DNA of 64,000 bases from Rebecca billardiae RCC1528 (Eukaryota > Protista > Haptophyta), in contig OZ251238.1 of NCBI GenBank assembly GCA_965240325.2, positions 310,001 to 374,000 on the forward strand, read 5' to 3'. The notes below the pieces were generated by a model. It was given only the letters and a program-made list of their open reading frames with translations, did no database searches and was not told the DNA's origin. Below are positions 33,314-62,000 of the stretch, one piece after another. The position numbers and the translations under genes were made by a program. How positions within the stretch are numbered: position 1 is the stretch's first letter; every line of letters starts with the position of its first letter.

Positions 33314-36300
33314 TCACCGCCGGCCGGAGCGCTTGAGGCCGAGCGCGGGCCCCGGCGTCGAGCCGCGAGAGGAGCCTTCGGCATCGTGCTCGGAGGCGTC
33401 GTCGTCGCGCTCCTCGCCAATGGCGCCCATGCCGAGCTTCACCGAGGGCGAGCGCGGCGTGGAGAAGGGCGTCCCCTGCGCGCCGTCGCCGTCGTCGAGC
33501 GCCTCGACGTTCATCCCATCGCCCTGCTCGTCGCTCGTGCGCGAGCTGCGCGCGCTGGGCCCGCCGAGCACCTCCTGCACCGAGACCTTCCAGTCGCCGC
33601 TGATCGCGCCGACCACGCGCGTGGTGTCGGGCGAGTCGGCCGTGTCACGCGGGTTGAAGAGCTGCCGCGTCGGCCGGCGCTCGTTGCGCCTGTGCACGCC
33701 GGTCGTGTCCGGATCGGCGTGGCTGCGGCGGAGGCCGGACACCTTGCGGGCGCGCGTGAGGCCGCCGCCCGCCGACGCGCCCAGCGCCGCCGACGCGGCG
33801 CCGCCGCCGCCCACGCTGCCGGGCGGCAGGGGGAGCGTGTCGCCGCCGCCCTCCATCCCGGCGCGCGAGCTCTTTCGCCTGGGCGCGCCGCCAGCCGCGC
33901 CGCCGCCCTGCGAGATCTCGGCGAGGCGAGATTGCTTGCGGCCGCGCGTCAGCCCACCACCCCCCTCGACGGCGGCCGCGGCGTCGGCGGCGAGGTCGCC
34001 GCTGTTGTTGCCGCCGCCGCCGCCAAAGGCGAGGCGCGAGTTGAGCCGCCTGCGCGCGAGCTGGCCGCTGCCCGGATGCGGAGGCGAGCTGCCGCCGCCC
34101 TCGTTGATGTCGGCGAGGCGCGAGGCCTTGCGCCCGCGCGCAATCCCGCCGCCGCCGCCGCCGCCGCCGCCCAGCCTGTCCTCCGCCTCCGGGCTCTCGT
34201 CGACCGGCTGCATCGCGCGCGACATGCGCGTGCGCGCGCTGGGCTCGCGGCGCGAGCGCCCGAACACCCAGTTGCTGAAGTCGCCCGACTTCGCCGCCCA
34301 GTCGCCGCTCATCTTCTTGTCGTGCTTGGCGGCGCCGTGGTGCAGCTGCAGCGGCTCGTGCGGAGGCTCCTCCTCGACCGGCTCGTCCGCGTCCTCGCGC
34401 CCGGGCCCCGACTTGGCCCAGTCGAGGGCGGCGGTGGAGACGGAGTACTCGAAGCGGTCGGTGTCCTGCTCGGCCGCGACGACCTCGTCCGTCTGCATCC
34501 GCCCGCGGCGCAGCCCGCCCGGGTTCGCCAGGCTGGACGTGCCCATGCGCGGGCGGCGCAGCACGCCGCGCTCGCCCGCCACCGGCGAGGCGGGTCCGGG
34601 CGAGGCGAGCGGCGTGCCGTTGCCGTCGTACGACTTCTTGCGCGGGCGCCTGATGTGCTGGTTGAGGTGCGGCGCGCCGGCGATCGCCGCGCCGATGTGG
34701 TTGGCGCCCATGTCGACGCCGAAGCTCGCGAGCGTGTGCCCCGCCGCCTCCACCTTGGGGTCGTTCGGCGAGTCGCACGTGCGCTTTGCGATCTCCCACT
34801 CGATGCGCGCGACGTCGTATGGCAGCTTGAACTTGTGCGCGAGCCGCACGGCCTCGCCCCACATCTTGAGCGCCTCGTAGCGGCGGTCGAGGAGCCAGGC
34901 GATCCCGCCCCTGTACAGCAGGAAGCGCGGCGTCGCCGCGCGGAAGCGCGACGCGAACAGCTCGAGCTGCCCCACCGCCTCGGCGGCCAGCTGCTGGTTG
35001 GTCGCGTTGGGCTCGCGCCCGAACGCCTCGACAAACACGTGCGCGATGTGCGAGTACGCAAAGAAGAGGAGGAACTGGGAGGGCATGCGGATGCGGCGCA
35101 TCTCGAGGAGCGAGATCTCGGCGGAGGCGAGCGCGGCGAGCAGGTCGTTCGCGCACAGCAGCTTCGCCATCGCGACGCAGCCGTGCATCGAGACGATCAG
35201 CGGGACAGAGCCAGTCGACTCGAGCCGCCCCTCCAGCCGCTCGAGCTCGGCGGTGGCGGTCTGCACGGCCGAGTGGCGGCCGAGCATGAGGAGCGCGGCG
35301 ACGCGCGTGACGGCGAGCAGCGCGTACATCTGCACGTCCTTCCGCCCCTCCGCCGAGCGCGCCGCCTGCGTGAGCAGCGTCTGCGCCTCCTCCAGCTCGC
35401 CCTGGCACATGAGCACGAGCGCCTTCTGGTTGGCCGACTCCTCAAAGCGGCGCCACATGCCCAGCTCGAGCGCCTTGTCCATCGTGAGCTGGAAGGCCTC
35501 GCACGCCGCGGCCCACTCGCACAGCTCGACGGAGCAGAGCATCCCCTTCATCATCATGCAGTACAGCGTCGTCGGCTCGCGCCGGTTGCGCTCCTCCTCC
35601 GCCGCCTCGGGCAGCAGCTCGCAGATGGCCAGCGCTTCCTTCTGCAGGCGCAGCGCCGTCACGATCGAGCCGGTGCGGCCGTGCGCGAGCGCGGCGGAGG
35701 AGAGCGAGCGCGCGAGCTGCGCGCCGCCCACGCGCGCCGCCACGTCGAGCCCGCGCAGCGTGGCGATGTCGTGCGCGAGCACGTCGCCCATGAAGTAGAA
35801 CGCGCGAGACGCCATCTGGTACCCGAACGCGGTCAGCTCGCACGACAGCTGGCTGGGCGGCGCCGAGCGGAGCGCGCGCGGCGTCTTGGAGCGGATGCCC
35901 AGCGGCATGTTGGCCCACGCGAGCTCGATCGCGAGGATCGCGCGCTTCCGCGCCGCCGAGCCGAGCGGCAGCGGCATGTTGACCACCTCGAGCAGCTCCT
36001 CGAGCGCCTCCATCGCCTCGGCGACCTGGCCGATGCGTAGCGCCGCGTCGGCGAGCGCGGCCGCGTACCCGGCGTGCTTCTCGACGGTGACGCCGAGCTC
36101 GACGCGCTCGTCGGGCGTGCACTTGTGCACGATCGTGAGCACCTCGTTGAGGAACGAGACCGCCTCGTGGTTCGCGTACTGCTTCAGCGCCACCTCCGCG
36201 CACAGCTCGAAGTAGCGCACCGCCTCGCCGTCGAGCTCCGCGCGCTGCCAGTGGTGCGCCAGCACCGGGTAGAAGGACGGCAGCTGCTCCTGGTACTGCT

Positions 36301-56218: not shown

Positions 56219-57748
56219 ATGCTGGCCACGGCCGTCCAGCTGCTCGCGACGGCCGCCGTCCTTCGTGGACCCCCGCGCGCGCGGCCCCGGGCGTCGACGT
56301 GCGTGATGGCGGAGGAGGAGCTCCTCCAGCGTCCCGGCGGCGCGCCGATCACGCTCGCCGACCTCTCCGACGTCGCGCGCTCCTTCTGGGGCGACGCGTC
56401 GCTCGAGGTGCGCGGCTGCGAGCTCGTGTCTGAGAATCGCTTCCCCGGCTCGCACTCAGGCGTGCTGCGGCTGAGCACGGTGGCGTCGGCGGGCGAGGCG
56501 ACGCGGTACCTCTTCCTCAAGAAGGTCTCCGCCGCCGCGCTCGCGCACCGACCCTGGCCTGACCGTCGCCGCACTCTCGCTTACGCTCGCACGGAAGCGC
56601 GCTTCTTCGCCGAGTTTGCCACGGAGCCGAGCTTCGTCGCCGCGCTGGCGCGCACGCGCACGCTGCTCCCGCGCCTCGCGGCGAGCGAGAACCAGCTCGA
56701 GGAGGTGCTCGGCGACGCGCCCGTGCACGCGCCCGCGGGCGAGCCGCCCGCAGACGGCGCGCTCGGCCGCGCGGGTGCCGTGCTCTTCATCGAGGCCGCG
56801 CGCGGGTACGAGCAGGCGTCGCCGCTGAGCGAGGCGCAGGCGGCGGCGGCGCTGCGCGCGGTGGCCGGGATGCACGCCGCGGCGTGGGGCGACGTGCCCC
56901 TGCTCCGCCGCGCGAGCGAGCGGCTGCAGCGCCACGGCGGCTGCTTCGCCCTCGAGATCCGCACCGCCGCCGAGCTCGCCCAGCTGGGCCCCAACTGGCG
57001 CGCGTTTGCGGACAGGTTCGGCGCGCTCGAGCCCGAGCTGTTCGCGCGGCCGGGCATCGCGAGGCTGGGCGAGCGGCTGGCGGCGTGGGCGGAGCGCGCG
57101 TCCGCGCGCGTCTCCGTCGGCCCCGACGGCGCGCACGCCACGCTCATCCACGGCGACTTCAAGGCGTACAACGTGATGCTGCGCGCTGCCGCTCACTCCG
57201 CGGCCGCTCACTCCGCGGCCGCTCACTCCGCGGCCGCTCACTCCGCGGCCGAGCCGCAGCGCGCGACGGGCGGGGCGGCGGGCGGGGCGGAGGGCGGGGC
57301 GGAGGGCGGGGCGGAGGGCGGGGCGGAGGGCGGGGCGATGCTCATCGACTTCGCGTCGTGCGGCGTCGGGCTGGGCATGACCGACGTGGCGATGCTCCTC
57401 GCGCACTCCGTCGCGCCCGCCACGCTGCGCGCCGGCGGCGCGGAGCGGCTGCTGGACGGCTACCTGGCCACCCTCCGAGCCGCGGGCGTGGAGTACGCGG
57501 AGGCGGCCGCGCGCGAGCACTACCACGCGGCGACGGTGGACTACGCGCGGTTCGTGGTCTCGCGCTTCTGGGGGGACGCGTCGGAGGAGAGCTTCGCCAA
57601 GCGCGCCGCCAACCCGAACGTCTGTCTGCCCAACCGGGATGTGGACGCCGCGCTGCGCTTTGCCGAGCGCGTCGACGCGTCGCTGGGCTGGCTCGAGCAG
57701 CTCGAGGCCGCCGGCGTGCCGCCGAGCGAGCTGCCCGGCCGGTGGTGA
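56219..57748 (+). CDS. EcKinase/choline kinase/APH-like small-molecule kinase, possibly plastid-targeted
   Basis: Motifs YLFLKK, TEARFF, VAGMHAAAWG, TLIHGDFKAYNVM and LIDFASCGVGLGMTDVA. The N-terminus is signal-plus-transit-like. Confidence 0.85.
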   Translation: MLATAVQLLATAAVLRGPPRARPRASTCVMAEEELLQRPGGAPITLADLSDVARSFWGDASLEVRGCELVSENRFPGSHSGVLRLSTVASAGEATRYLFLKKVSAAALAHRPWPDRRRTLAYARTEARFFAEFATEPSFVAALARTRTLLPRLAASENQLEEVLGDAPVHAPAGEPPADGALGRAGAVLFIEAARGYEQASPLSEAQAAAALRAVAGMHAAAWGDVPLLRRASERLQRHGGCFALEIRTAAELAQLGPNWRAFADRFGALEPELFARPGIARLGERLAAWAERASARVSVGPDGAHATLIHGDFKAYNVMLRAAAHSAAAHSAAAHSAAAHSAAEPQRATGGAAGGAEGGAEGGAEGGAEGGAMLIDFASCGVGLGMTDVAMLLAHSVAPATLRAGGAERLLDGYLATLRAAGVEYAEAAAREHYHAATVDYARFVVSRFWGDASEESFAKRAANPNVCLPNRDVDAALRFAERVDASLGWLEQLEAAGVPPSELPGRW

Positions 57749-58128
57749 CGACAGGCTGCGAAGGGCGGGCGAGTGGCCCCGCTCCCACCCGTCGGCTCCC
57801 GCCCGAGCCGTCGTCTGATGGCGCGCTGCACGTCGCCGGGGCGGCCCGAACATGTTCCGACTAACAGTTGGAGTGGCAGCAGACGCGTCGTGCCGATCAA
57901 CACGACGAGGACCACTCAGATGAAAGCCAGCTTCGGGCTGGTACAGTAGTGGTAGTACTGTCAAAGGAACCGTAGTACTGTAAGCTACTTTTTACTAGTC
58001 AGTAAGACTGTAGAGTTAGACGCCGCCACGGCCGGTAACGGTTCGTTACAGTAAGCCAGGCGAGCGCCGGACTGTGTGCAGTCCGGCTGCGTTGTCTTGT
58101 GAGGCGTCCCCTCCACCTCCGCGACCCC

Positions 58129-58485
58129 ATGCTGCTCCGCGCGCTCGTCTTCCTGCTCGCCGCGGCTTGCGCGTACGCACCGCGCGGAGAGATCGTCACG
58201 TGCTCCTCGTGAAAGCTCAACCGCCACCCTGAACTCAAGCAGTTCATCAAGGGTGGGGCTCACGGCGCGAACATTGGCGAGGCCGCCGAGGTGAACAAGT
58301 ATACCGACCTCAAGGTCAAGTTCGTCTCAGGGCACACGCCCACGCTCAAAATCTACGACGACGAGTCGGGCGCGGAGGAGCCGGTCGAGGCGATCGATCT
58401 CTCCAAGGTCGAGCTCGAGGGCGGCATCGAGCGCGTGCGCTCGCTGCTCTCTGAGAAGGGCTTCTCGATCAAGGAGGAGCTCTAG
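58129..58485 (+). CDS. SELENOM: Selenoprotein M (SelM/Sep15 family) with in-frame UGA read as Sec
   Basis: MLLRALVFLLAAACAYA-PRGEIVTCSS[TGA 58210-58212]KLNRHPELKQFIKG…YTDLKVKFVSGHTPTLKIYDD…LLSEKGFSIKEEL*. It has a signal peptide, CxxU, an ER-retention-like KEEL and a downstream SECIS. Confidence 0.93.
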
Positions 58486-58570: not shown

Positions 58571-58644
58571 GCGCCCGCACCATGACGCGCGACCACACAC
58601 CGCCCCACGCGGGTGGTCGTCGCCGAGAGACGCAATGCAGGCGC
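58571..58644 (+). promoter_or_regulatory. SECIS element (type II) in the 3' UTR
   Basis: Helix I is GCGCCCGCA/TGCAGGCGC. The core is ATGA (58582-58585) with GA (58625-58626). Helix II is GCGCGACCAC/GTGGTCGTCGC. The apical bulge is ACA, with a CCGC/GCGG ministem. Confidence 0.85.
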
Positions 58645-59066: not shown

Positions 59067-62000
59067 TCAGCTGAAGTGGTGCTCGACGTGCGCGTAGTAG
59101 GAGTGCGGGTTGCTCTCCTGCACCATCAGCTGCAGGCCGTGCCGGATCTGCCGGCGCAGGTGCGCGTGCGCGCGCGCGAGCTCCGCCTCCACACCGGCCG
59201 CCGAGTCGTCGGCGGCCGCAGGCGCAAGCGCACCCGGGCTCGAGGCGGGCGCACCCGCGGTGCCGGGTGCCGCCGCGCCGGTGGCGACGCTCGAGGCGCC
59301 GGACGGCGCGTGCGCGTGCTCGCACCGGCTGGCGTCGCCCGCGCCCCCGACGCGCGGCGCGTCCGCACGAAGCGGCGCGTCCGCGGCCGTCGAGTCGGTC
59401 GGCGTCGGCGCGGCCGCGGCGCTGGCGGCGGCAGCGTCGAGCTGGCGCGCCGCCTCCCACGCGGCGGCGATCGACTCGTGCACCGCGCCGGCGCCCTGCG
59501 CATGCGCGCACGCTTCGAGCACGCGCGCGTGCAGCCGAGCGGGGCAGCGGCTCAGCCCGTCGGCGAGCGCGTGCAGCGTGTCGTCGTGTAGCGAGATTGT
59601 ATCTCGGCCGTGGTCGTACGGCACGCGCTGCGCCGAGATGGAATCAGCGCCGCCCGCGCCGTCGGCGCCGGCGGCGGCCGACGCCGCGGGCTCGCGCGCG
59701 CGCGCGCCCGGCGCGGCTGTGTGCGCGTGCTGCCCCAGCAGACGCATCTCTCGCGCGCACGCGAGCGCGCCGCCCAGCTCGACGTAGAGCACGCCTGCTG
59801 CCGGCCGCTCGGCCGCGCCGGGCCGGCGGTAGACGGACACGCCGCGGTCTGGCCGGTTGTACGCCGCCGCGGCGGGCGCGTCTGGCGCGGGCGCGGCCGC
59901 GGCCATCGGGCCGCGGCCGCCGCCGCCCGCCGCCTCGGCGGGCGCCCGCGGCCGCGCGGGCGGCGTGCCAGCGTGCTGCGAAGCGCCTCGCACCGGGAGT
60001 GCGTGCGCATAGGGGCAGTCGGCGAGCGCGCACGGCGTGCCTGCGAGCGCGTGGCGGCACAGAGCCCCGCCCACGCGCGCGCGCAGGTGGTCTGCCAGCG
60101 TCGCACGCTGCTGGCCGGCCCCGCTGCCCGCGCCGCCGCCAGCCGCGCCACCGGCCGCGAGTGCTTGCTCGCCGCCGCCGCCGCCGGCCGCGCCGTTCCG
60201 CGCGCGGCCGCGCTCGGCGCGCGCAGCCCTCTTGAGCAGCGCGGAGAGGAGCGCGCGCCGCCTGCGCTGCGGGGCTGCGCGCGCGCGCTCGCCCCCGCCG
60301 CCTCCCCCGGCCGCGCCCTCGCCCTCCGCCTCCGCCTCCAGCGCGCGCATCTCATCCTCCGTTGGCCAGCGGAGCGGCGCGCCGCACGGCGCGCACACAG
60401 TGGGCGGCGCGCCCGCCGCGCCGCCGCCTCCGCCGCCTCCGCCGCCTCCGCCGCCTCCGCTGCCGGCCCAGCTGTCCACGATGGCGTGCAGCCGCGCCTC
60501 CACGGCCGCCGCCGAGCGCAGAGGGGCGTCGCGCTCCGCCGCCCAGCCGCGCGCCTCGGAGGCCGGCGCCGCCGACCCGCCGCCGCGCGCGCCGGCGCCG
60601 AGCGGCGGAGCCAGCGGCGGCGGCGGCGCAGCAGTGGGCGCGCGCAGCTGCGCTGCCGGGGCCAGTCGCGCCTCGCCCCGCGCCAGCCGCGCGCCGGGCA
60701 GCGCGAAGAGGAAGGCCGCGGCGGGCTCGTTGCGCTCGGAGCGCTCCCAGTCGAAGGCCAGGTGCGTCGCCCTGAGCCCGGCCGCGCGCGCGCACAGCGC
60801 CCCGAGCATCACGTGCTCGATCCCCAGGTGGAGCGTGCGGCAGCTCAGCGCCCACGCGCGCACGTGCACGGCGCGCGGTGGCGGCGCGCTCGCGCGCGGC
60901 GCGGCGGCGGGCGGCGCGGCGGCGGGCGGCGCGGCCGCGGCGGGCGGCGCGGCCGCTGGCGCTCCGGCGGCGCGCTCGCACGGCTCGAGCTCCGAGCCCG
61001 GCGGCAGCTCGCGCGTGCCCGCCTCGTGCACCACCAGCCCCACCTGCCCATGGTCGCCAAAGCGGTCAGCTGAGTGCACGGACAGCACGGCGTGGCGCGC
61101 GGCGCTGGCGAGGTGGCGCACGTCCGCGGCGGAGAGCGGGAGCTTGCGCGCGTTGTGCTGGTTGGTGCGCTCGCTCAGCTGCGCGGCGCGCACGAAGGGC
61201 GCGTCCTCGTCCGACGCCGCCGCCGCGTCGTCGCCGCCGCCGCCCGCCTGGGCCGGCGAGTCCGCGCCGGCCGGCGCGCCCGCGCGCTCGGTGGCTGGCG
61301 CCGCGGCCGCCGCGCCGCCGGCCGCGCCAGCCGGGCGCGCGCTCACGCCGCTGCCCGCGGCGGCGGGCTGCAGCGTCGTGATCGTGACGCGCACGTTGAG
61401 CGAGGCGAGCCACGCGTTCGACGACAGCGCGGCGGAGTGCACGCGCACGGCGGCGGCGGCGGGCGCGGCGGCTGGCTTGGCCGGGGGCGGTGGCGCGCTG
61501 GCCTCGGCCGCGCCGCCGCCACCGTTCGGCTGCGCGGCCGCGGCCGCCGCGTGCTCGGCGATGAAGGCGTGGCGCGCGAGCATCTGCCGGTACAGCGCCG
61601 TGCGCCGCGCGTCCTCCGCGCTCGCGCCGCCCGCCACCGCCCCCTCGGCCCCGCCCGCTCCGCGCGCGCGCCCCGTGTGCCCCGGCGCGCTCAGCACGCC
61701 GCCGCCGGCGCTCAGCGGCAGATCGAGAGCCCAGTGCGCGCGCACGAAGCCGAGCAGCGCGGAGGGGTCGCGCGGGAGCTGCACGACGGCGAGGCCCTCC
61801 GCGCCGAGCGCCGCGCGCACCTCCGCGCACTCCGCCGCCGAGTCGTCCACCAGCACGAACGCGCTCAGCGGCAGCGCGAGCGCGCGCGCCAGCCCGGCGA
61901 TGTTTTCAGACTTGGGCCGCCAGTTGGCGCGCACGGCGACAATGTGGCGCTCGAGGGAGATTTGCATCTCCGAGGCGCGCTGGGCGAAGACGGCGCGCAC

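Follow-up and report, generated by a model that had tools for sequence, protein, structure and literature searches.

The gene at positions 58129 to 58485 of the window (the whole 64,000-nucleotide stretch of Rebecca billardiae RCC1528 DNA analysed here) is, with a probability that we put at roughly 0.9 from the sequence evidence, a functional gene for a SelM-type selenoprotein in a GC-rich alga. It reads in a single forward-strand frame of 118 codons, from ATG 58129 to TAG 58483-58485, and its sole internal stop is a TGA at 58210-58212, which is codon 28 and stands in the context T-C-S-S-TGA-K-L-N-R. Translation of the frame gives a 118-residue product with the N-terminus MLLRALVFLLAAACAYA and the C-terminus K-E-E-L, followed directly by TAG. 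The initial annotation had proposed this start codon, the TGA at codon 28 within C-S-S-TGA-KLNR, the length of 118 residues and the KEEL end, all of which are correct in the translation. Apart from codon 28, neither a stop nor a frameshift is found along the 118 codons.

The coding character of the frame was explored using GC3. The 27 codons located 5' of the TGA and the 90 codons located 3' of it both display a GC3 of 0.89, while in the flanks the value is 0.56 for the 50 in-frame triplets 5' of the ATG and 0.76 for those 3' of the stop codon. The equal values on both sides of the TGA, compared with 0.56 upstream, indicate that the coding signature begins at the ATG and crosses the TGA. The predicted gene model is a complete single-exon frame, for which an intron is unnecessary.

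The mechanical list of open reading frames recorded only 58291..58485 at this place, a 64-residue product with a GTG start, and the automatic gene call on two public Logan contigs gave the identical fragment. The claims that the list holds only this fragment and that automated pipelines would misannotate the gene were therefore borne out, the latter also by a Sep15-type model from Pavlovales sp. CCMP2436 (see below). An in-frame UGA that most likely encodes selenocysteine explains why automatic gene finders return only the 64-residue piece. The two Logan contigs derive from separate sequencing runs, possibly of one project; they are 100% identical to the window over 2.4 to 3.1 kb including the TGA and collinear with both neighbouring genes, and they belong to the same organism, so they are uninformative on comparison or splicing.

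The gene stands alone in a 1.3-kb gap between its neighbours, which are listed in the table with the features of the gene itself. An AT-richer block at 57940-58010 on the forward strand, 120 to 190 nt 5' of the ATG, contains two copies of the decamer GTAGTACTGT spaced by 20 nt, together with looser copies of it, AGTAAGACTGTAG. No further exact copy of the decamer is present in the window, where 0.4 copies are expected, and two copies were reached in 6 of 100 shuffles. This repeat may be a promoter-proximal motif or a product of chance.

Table. Features of the SelM-type gene and its surroundings, in positions of the window.
Feature	Position	Strand	Basis or description
Upstream neighbour	TGA stop 57746-57748	+	APH-type phosphotransferase domain
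SelM-type coding frame, predicted Sec at residue 28	58129..58485	+	Sequence, translation, GC3
Signal-peptide-like N-terminus	58129..58179 (boundary approximate)	+	Read by eye from the translation
Redox motif C25-S26-S27-U28 (CxxU)	58201..58212	+	Translation; C-x-x-TGA also in paralog L002 and in environmental relatives
In-frame TGA, putative selenocysteine codon	58210..58212	+	Sequence; six-frame Pfam match spans the TGA
Sep15/SelM thioredoxin-like redox domain, post-Sec	58213..58482	+	PF08806, paralog alignment, PDB 2A2P and 2A4H
C-terminal K-E-E-L, putative KDEL-type ER-retrieval signal	58471..58482	+	Translation, fit to consensus
Type-2 SECIS-like element	58571..58644	+	Folds, descriptor scan
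Downstream neighbour	Ends near 59067	convergent	1277-residue open reading frame without a Pfam match

The predicted product has the layout of a small secretory redox protein. By inspection, its N-terminus passes from a charged Arg through a hydrophobic core to small residues (A-C-A or A-Y-A), with small residues at positions -3 and -1. Only 24 residues precede the Cys of the redox motif, most of them putative signal peptide, and a Cys-rich N-terminal domain is absent. This domain, which binds UGGT, separates Sep15 from SelM, which is devoid of it. The combination of CxxU and KLNR with the absence of the Cys-rich domain therefore places the gene in the SelM type and not in Sep15, in line with the initial annotation. 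Identity as Sep15 (SELENOF) was considered and discarded, given that the motif is CxxU rather than CxU and that the Cys-rich domain is missing. At the other end of the protein, KEEL fits the ER-targeting consensus [KRHQSA]-[DENQ]-E-L. Alignment with the paralogs revealed two lineage-specific insertions in the redox domain, one of about 10 residues (GGAHGANIGE...) and one of about 4 residues.

The family assignment rests on profile searches. The piece after the TGA (58213-58482) matched Pfam PF08806 (Sep15_SelM) with 38.3 bits, above the cut-off of 26, over profile positions 10 to 75 of 75. In a six-frame Pfam search of the whole assembly (G000, 72 Mb in 41 contigs, where the window is C21:310001-374000), the match widened to profile positions 2 to 75, with one TGA inside it. 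This search yielded four loci of the Sep15/SelM family, each with exactly one in-frame TGA within the match, at the redox position. Two of them (L001, at G000:C5:2779949-2783167, and L003) are of the Sep15 type, with the Cys-rich N-terminal domain and C-K-TGA-R-L, and they illustrate the contrast with the gene studied here. The SelM-type loci are L002, which reads C-S-A-TGA-R-L-N-R-L-P-E-V-K, and the window gene, which reads C-S-S-TGA-K-L-N-R-H-P-E-L-K.

A profile built from the four post-TGA paralog pieces and searched against the PDB matched fly Sep15 (2A4H, E 1.1e-11) as well as mouse SelM (2A2P, E 1.3e-7). In 2A2P, the alignment runs from Q-L-N-R-L-K-E-V-K-A-F onward, the stretch that comes after the Sec of the CxxU motif. 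The lone post-TGA piece matched neither SelM nor Sep15 when it was searched against the PDB with phmmer. A word-index protein search with the 90-residue piece returned nothing beyond the 64-residue fragment of the window itself, and the same type of search with the paralog alignment returned only fragments and one mis-modelled Sep15-type protein.

Two of the paralogs have features of their own. In L003 (G000:C1:765033-768230), TGA occurs twice in frame, at the usual redox site C-K-TGA-R-L and again at oriented position 1399-1401, within the Cys-rich N-terminal domain, where L003 reads C-S-S-TGA-T and L001 reads C-S-A-C-T. L003 may thus be a Sep15 in which a second Sec takes the place of a structural Cys. 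In L002 (G000:C14:512367-515582, minus strand), the frame stays open for about 180 codons past the domain; this extension has a high GC3 and encodes a hydrophobic helix. The only SECIS-like hairpin of this locus, with a CAGA bulge devoid of AA, lies inside the extension and coincides with the single 20-codon block whose GC3 falls to 0.55. This arrangement suggests that an intron or a stop has gone unrecognised, or else that the SECIS element is within coding sequence.

To look beyond this genome, marine and other metagenome contigs were scanned with the pattern [KR]LNR[HL]PE[LV]K and with another located beyond it, both lying wholly 3' of the TGA. Nine relatives (L037-L045) were confirmed, with 29 to 38% identity over the whole post-Sec piece. 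All nine carry a TGA in frame directly before [KR]LNR, in the upstream part for which the scan did not select. The initial annotation had expected a Cys or Sec at position 28 of homologs, and indeed TGA occupies this position in the nine environmental relatives as well as in paralog L002. Eight of the nine have C-x-x ahead of the TGA, in the forms C-R-G, C-S-G, C-G-G or C-P-G, and these same eight, whose 5' part is intact, show a hydrophobic, signal-like N-terminus 25 to 50 residues before CxxU; the contig of L042 stops at the TGA. Several relatives end in NEEL, REEL, HEEL or KTEL.

The genome encodes components required for selenocysteine decoding. A tRNA-Sec was found with 72.2 bits, which exceeds the Rfam gathering score, and ARAGORN identified it as tRNA-SeC with anticodon tca. 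SepSecS was found with 356.8 bits, and a selD-like gene was found as two adjacent pieces with 110 and 88 bits. Besides the window gene, eight genes of selenoprotein families contain a TGA. These include three GPx genes with the canonical site NVAS[KR]-TGA-G, one SelT-like gene, in which the site is C-M-S-TGA, and one SelW-like gene, in which it is C-G-A-TGA (L014, L015, L016, L019 and L020, on contigs C5, C23, C25, C3 and C16), all of which are followed by a type-2 SECIS element 118 to 348 nt past the Pfam match. Two genes without TGA, a GPx of the Cys type (L013) and an Rdx gene (L018), served as controls within the genome. Taken together, the predicted genes show that this alga has a sizeable selenoproteome.

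A SECIS-like structure is located 96 nt after the stop codon. Helix I is formed by 58571-58579 paired with 58636-58644 (5+3 bp) and closes an internal loop, in which the core AUGA (58582-58585), followed by C, faces the GA at 58625-58626, itself preceded by C on the return strand. Helix II comprises 10 bp between 58587-58596 and 58613-58623, and above it lie the unpaired ACA (58597-58599) and a 4-bp ministem with a 5-nt loop (58600-58612). The bulge is thus ACA where AA is usual, and AA is absent from the entire apical part. The constrained fold has an energy of -22.4 kcal/mol, which is unexceptional at 70% GC (z of -1.3 to -1.8).

Constrained folding, which required an [AG]UGA core plus one base, a helix starting from the next base, and a closing base followed by GA, gave one clear candidate behind each of the eight other TGA genes. 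These candidates share one build, namely A/GUGA-C/U, a helix of 9 to 13 nt, an unpaired run with A's, a ministem and N-GA, which is that of type-2 SECIS elements (PMC2761289). The core is GUGA instead of AUGA in four of the five elements of the GPx, SelT-like and SelW-like genes and in that of L001. Across the genome, the apical bulge is ACA in the window gene, C-A-G-A in L002 and AA in the other seven elements.

A fixed descriptor was derived from these elements of the genome itself and was loosened to accept A.A besides AA so that the window element passes. On these terms it gave one match 3' of each of the nine TGA genes, none at the two control loci without TGA and none in sixteen random 10-kb genome stretches (320 kb over both strands). 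The rest of the window (128 kb over both strands) gave one match, at 35598-35662 on the minus strand. When the window was shuffled with its dinucleotides preserved, about 0.4 matches arose per 128 kb. The minus-strand match was rejected as a false positive, since its helix is ragged and it falls inside the long coding frame of a large gene. On the forward strand of the window, 58571-58644 is the only match. The false-positive rate of the descriptor is about 1 per 450 kb, and from these rates the probability of a chance match on the right strand within a few hundred bases past the stop is about one in a thousand.

Other searches for the element were less telling. Rfam SECIS models at E<=10 gave no match in the window region or at paralog loci L001-L003; as L001-L003 are clear selenoprotein genes and were missed as well, this result is uninformative rather than negative. 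A crude covariance model, made from a MAFFT alignment of the other eight SECIS elements, ranked the window element third in 128 kb (18.1 bits, E 0.065), a result that we judge weak because the model has only five reliable pairs and is dominated by GC-rich primary sequence. Among its top three matches, only the window element keeps the five pairs together with the AUGA and GA motifs. The loose pattern ATGA..AA..GA, with 145 matches, was too common to discriminate.

The ACA bulge is the sole slightly unusual feature of the window gene. Natural SECIS elements with an apical motif other than AA are known, with CC in mammalian SelM, SelO and Trxr3 (PMC2761289, PMC3316567). If the candidate SECIS functions with its A-C-A bulge, it could be a third natural apical class besides AA and mammalian CC, tied to SelM as in mammals, a suggestion that we regard as tentative and rather doubtful. 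Should it be true, a SelM-tied ACA bulge would hint at gene-specific tuning of Sec insertion.

The expression of the gene can be pictured as follows. Translation would start at ATG 58129, and UGA 58210-58212 (codon 28) would be decoded as selenocysteine without termination. The type-2 SECIS hairpin 58571-58644 in the 3' UTR would direct the insertion of Sec by recruiting a SECIS-binding protein, together with the elongation factor specific for Sec and its Sec-tRNA(UCA), as in eukaryotic Sec decoding in general. The N-terminal signal peptide would bring the 118-residue product into the ER, where KEEL would hold it, and CxxU on a thioredoxin-like fold would act there as a thiol-disulfide oxidoreductase, as the family membership suggests.

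Were the TGA instead a true stop, the locus would be a decayed or truncated SelM gene, yielding a 27-residue peptide or nothing functional. The failure of Rfam to report a SECIS element, the bulge of ACA in place of AA and the two insertions absent from the paralogs would all fit such decay. Against it, a decaying gene would have to have kept its 118 codons clear of any further stop or frameshift and its GC3 at 0.89 on either side of the TGA, with putative signal peptide, CxxU, domain and KEEL all intact. Moreover, at 96 nt past the stop codon there is a SECIS-like hairpin with the build typical of this genome, matched by a descriptor that returns about one false positive per 450 kb, and the genome uses Sec heavily. 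We therefore consider a true stop quite unlikely.

A different exon structure, with the TGA in an intron or otherwise bypassed and a mature protein without the CxxU stretch, has a precedent in Pavlovales sp. CCMP2436, whose relative of the Sep15-type paralog was deposited with a model of this kind. Here, such splicing would drop the conserved active site and LNR, which are in frame with TGA in all nine environmental relatives, and would cost the start of the Pfam domain, and the continuous frame and its uniform coding composition also speak against it, which makes this reading very unlikely. A TGA that arose in place of TGC or TGT through an error of sequencing or assembly, the protein then being a Cys-containing SelM homolog, would take a change of only one base, and nothing specific favours it. 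The two Logan contigs, from separate runs though perhaps of the same project, are identical including the TGA, and TGA is found at this position in all three paralogs and all nine relatives. A Cys form, furthermore, needs no SECIS element, and none is found behind the Cys-type GPx or the Rdx gene without TGA; an error of this kind is hardly credible. The reading of the locus as a SelM-type gene with a Sec codon is thus preferred over all three.

SelM is an ER protein with a Cys-X-X-Sec motif (PMC4289845), and Ostreococcus and Thalassiosira have been reported to possess it as a selenoprotein (PMC2375036). SelM is among 42 algal selenoprotein families and occurs also in the haptophyte Emiliania huxleyi, which has 96 selenoprotein genes (PMC7539508). 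Green algae, diatoms, pelagophytes and haptophytes are thus already known to have this family, and what is described here is a new gene of a known family. It is a textbook case: the family is well documented, as are its distribution among algae and the problem of annotation, and the gene settles no open question. It adds one correctly delimited selenoprotein where automatic calls yield a fragment, and it implies that in standard annotation the selenoprotein genes of this alga will go undetected or be mis-spliced. The nine SECIS elements could seed a lineage-specific SECIS model, since the Rfam models missed those tested (the window element and L001-L003).

Compared with its environmental relatives L037-L045, which read LNRLPEVK, the window gene reads LNRHPELK. 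It also has C-S-S-U where most relatives have C-G-G-U. The environmental genes are without its insertions and have AA in their SECIS bulges. In L043 and L044, the SECIS element has the same build as that of the window gene, with a 10-bp helix, a 3-nt bulge and a 4-bp ministem, the bulge being CAA.

With Sep15/SELENOF (fly 2A4H; L001 and L003 in this genome), the gene shares the Pfam family, the fold and the equivalent Sec position. Sep15, however, has CxU (C-K-U here) and the Cys-rich N-terminal domain, whereas the window gene has CxxU and is without that domain. A hypothetical protein of Pavlovales sp. CCMP2436, T492DRAFT_878809 (P0003), is also of the Sep15 type and related to L001. Its deposited model leaps from ...AVLQV to AEFLE..., omitting the stretch that carries C-K-TGA in L001, and from this comparison it looks like a misannotated selenoprotein in the deposited genome. 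The match to this protein suggests that the source of the window is probably a pavlovophyte-like haptophyte.

With mouse SelM (SELENOM, PDB 2A2P), the predicted product shares the layout of a small protein of the ER type, in which CxxU is followed by x-L-N-R, a Sep15/SelM domain and a C-terminal tetrapeptide resembling an ER-retrieval signal; the signal peptide of SelM has a putative counterpart here. The apical motif departs from AA in both, being CC in the type-2 SECIS of placental mammals and ACA in the candidate element of the window gene (PMC3316567, PMC4289845). Identity with 2A2P is nevertheless low, and the structure is reached by the paralog profile only, not by single-sequence phmmer. 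The window gene also differs from it in two short insertions past the LNR helix and in its KEEL end, which is of the true KDEL class.

With algal SelM from Ostreococcus, Thalassiosira, Emiliania huxleyi and Aureococcus, the gene shares membership in a family of marine algae that have large selenoproteomes (PMC2375036, PMC7539508). As in those algae, it coexists with Sep15-type, GPx, SelT-like and SelW-like genes. In contrast to the SelM of Aureococcus and Emiliania, where fusions to pVHL or ShKT occur, the window gene represents the plain single-domain form.
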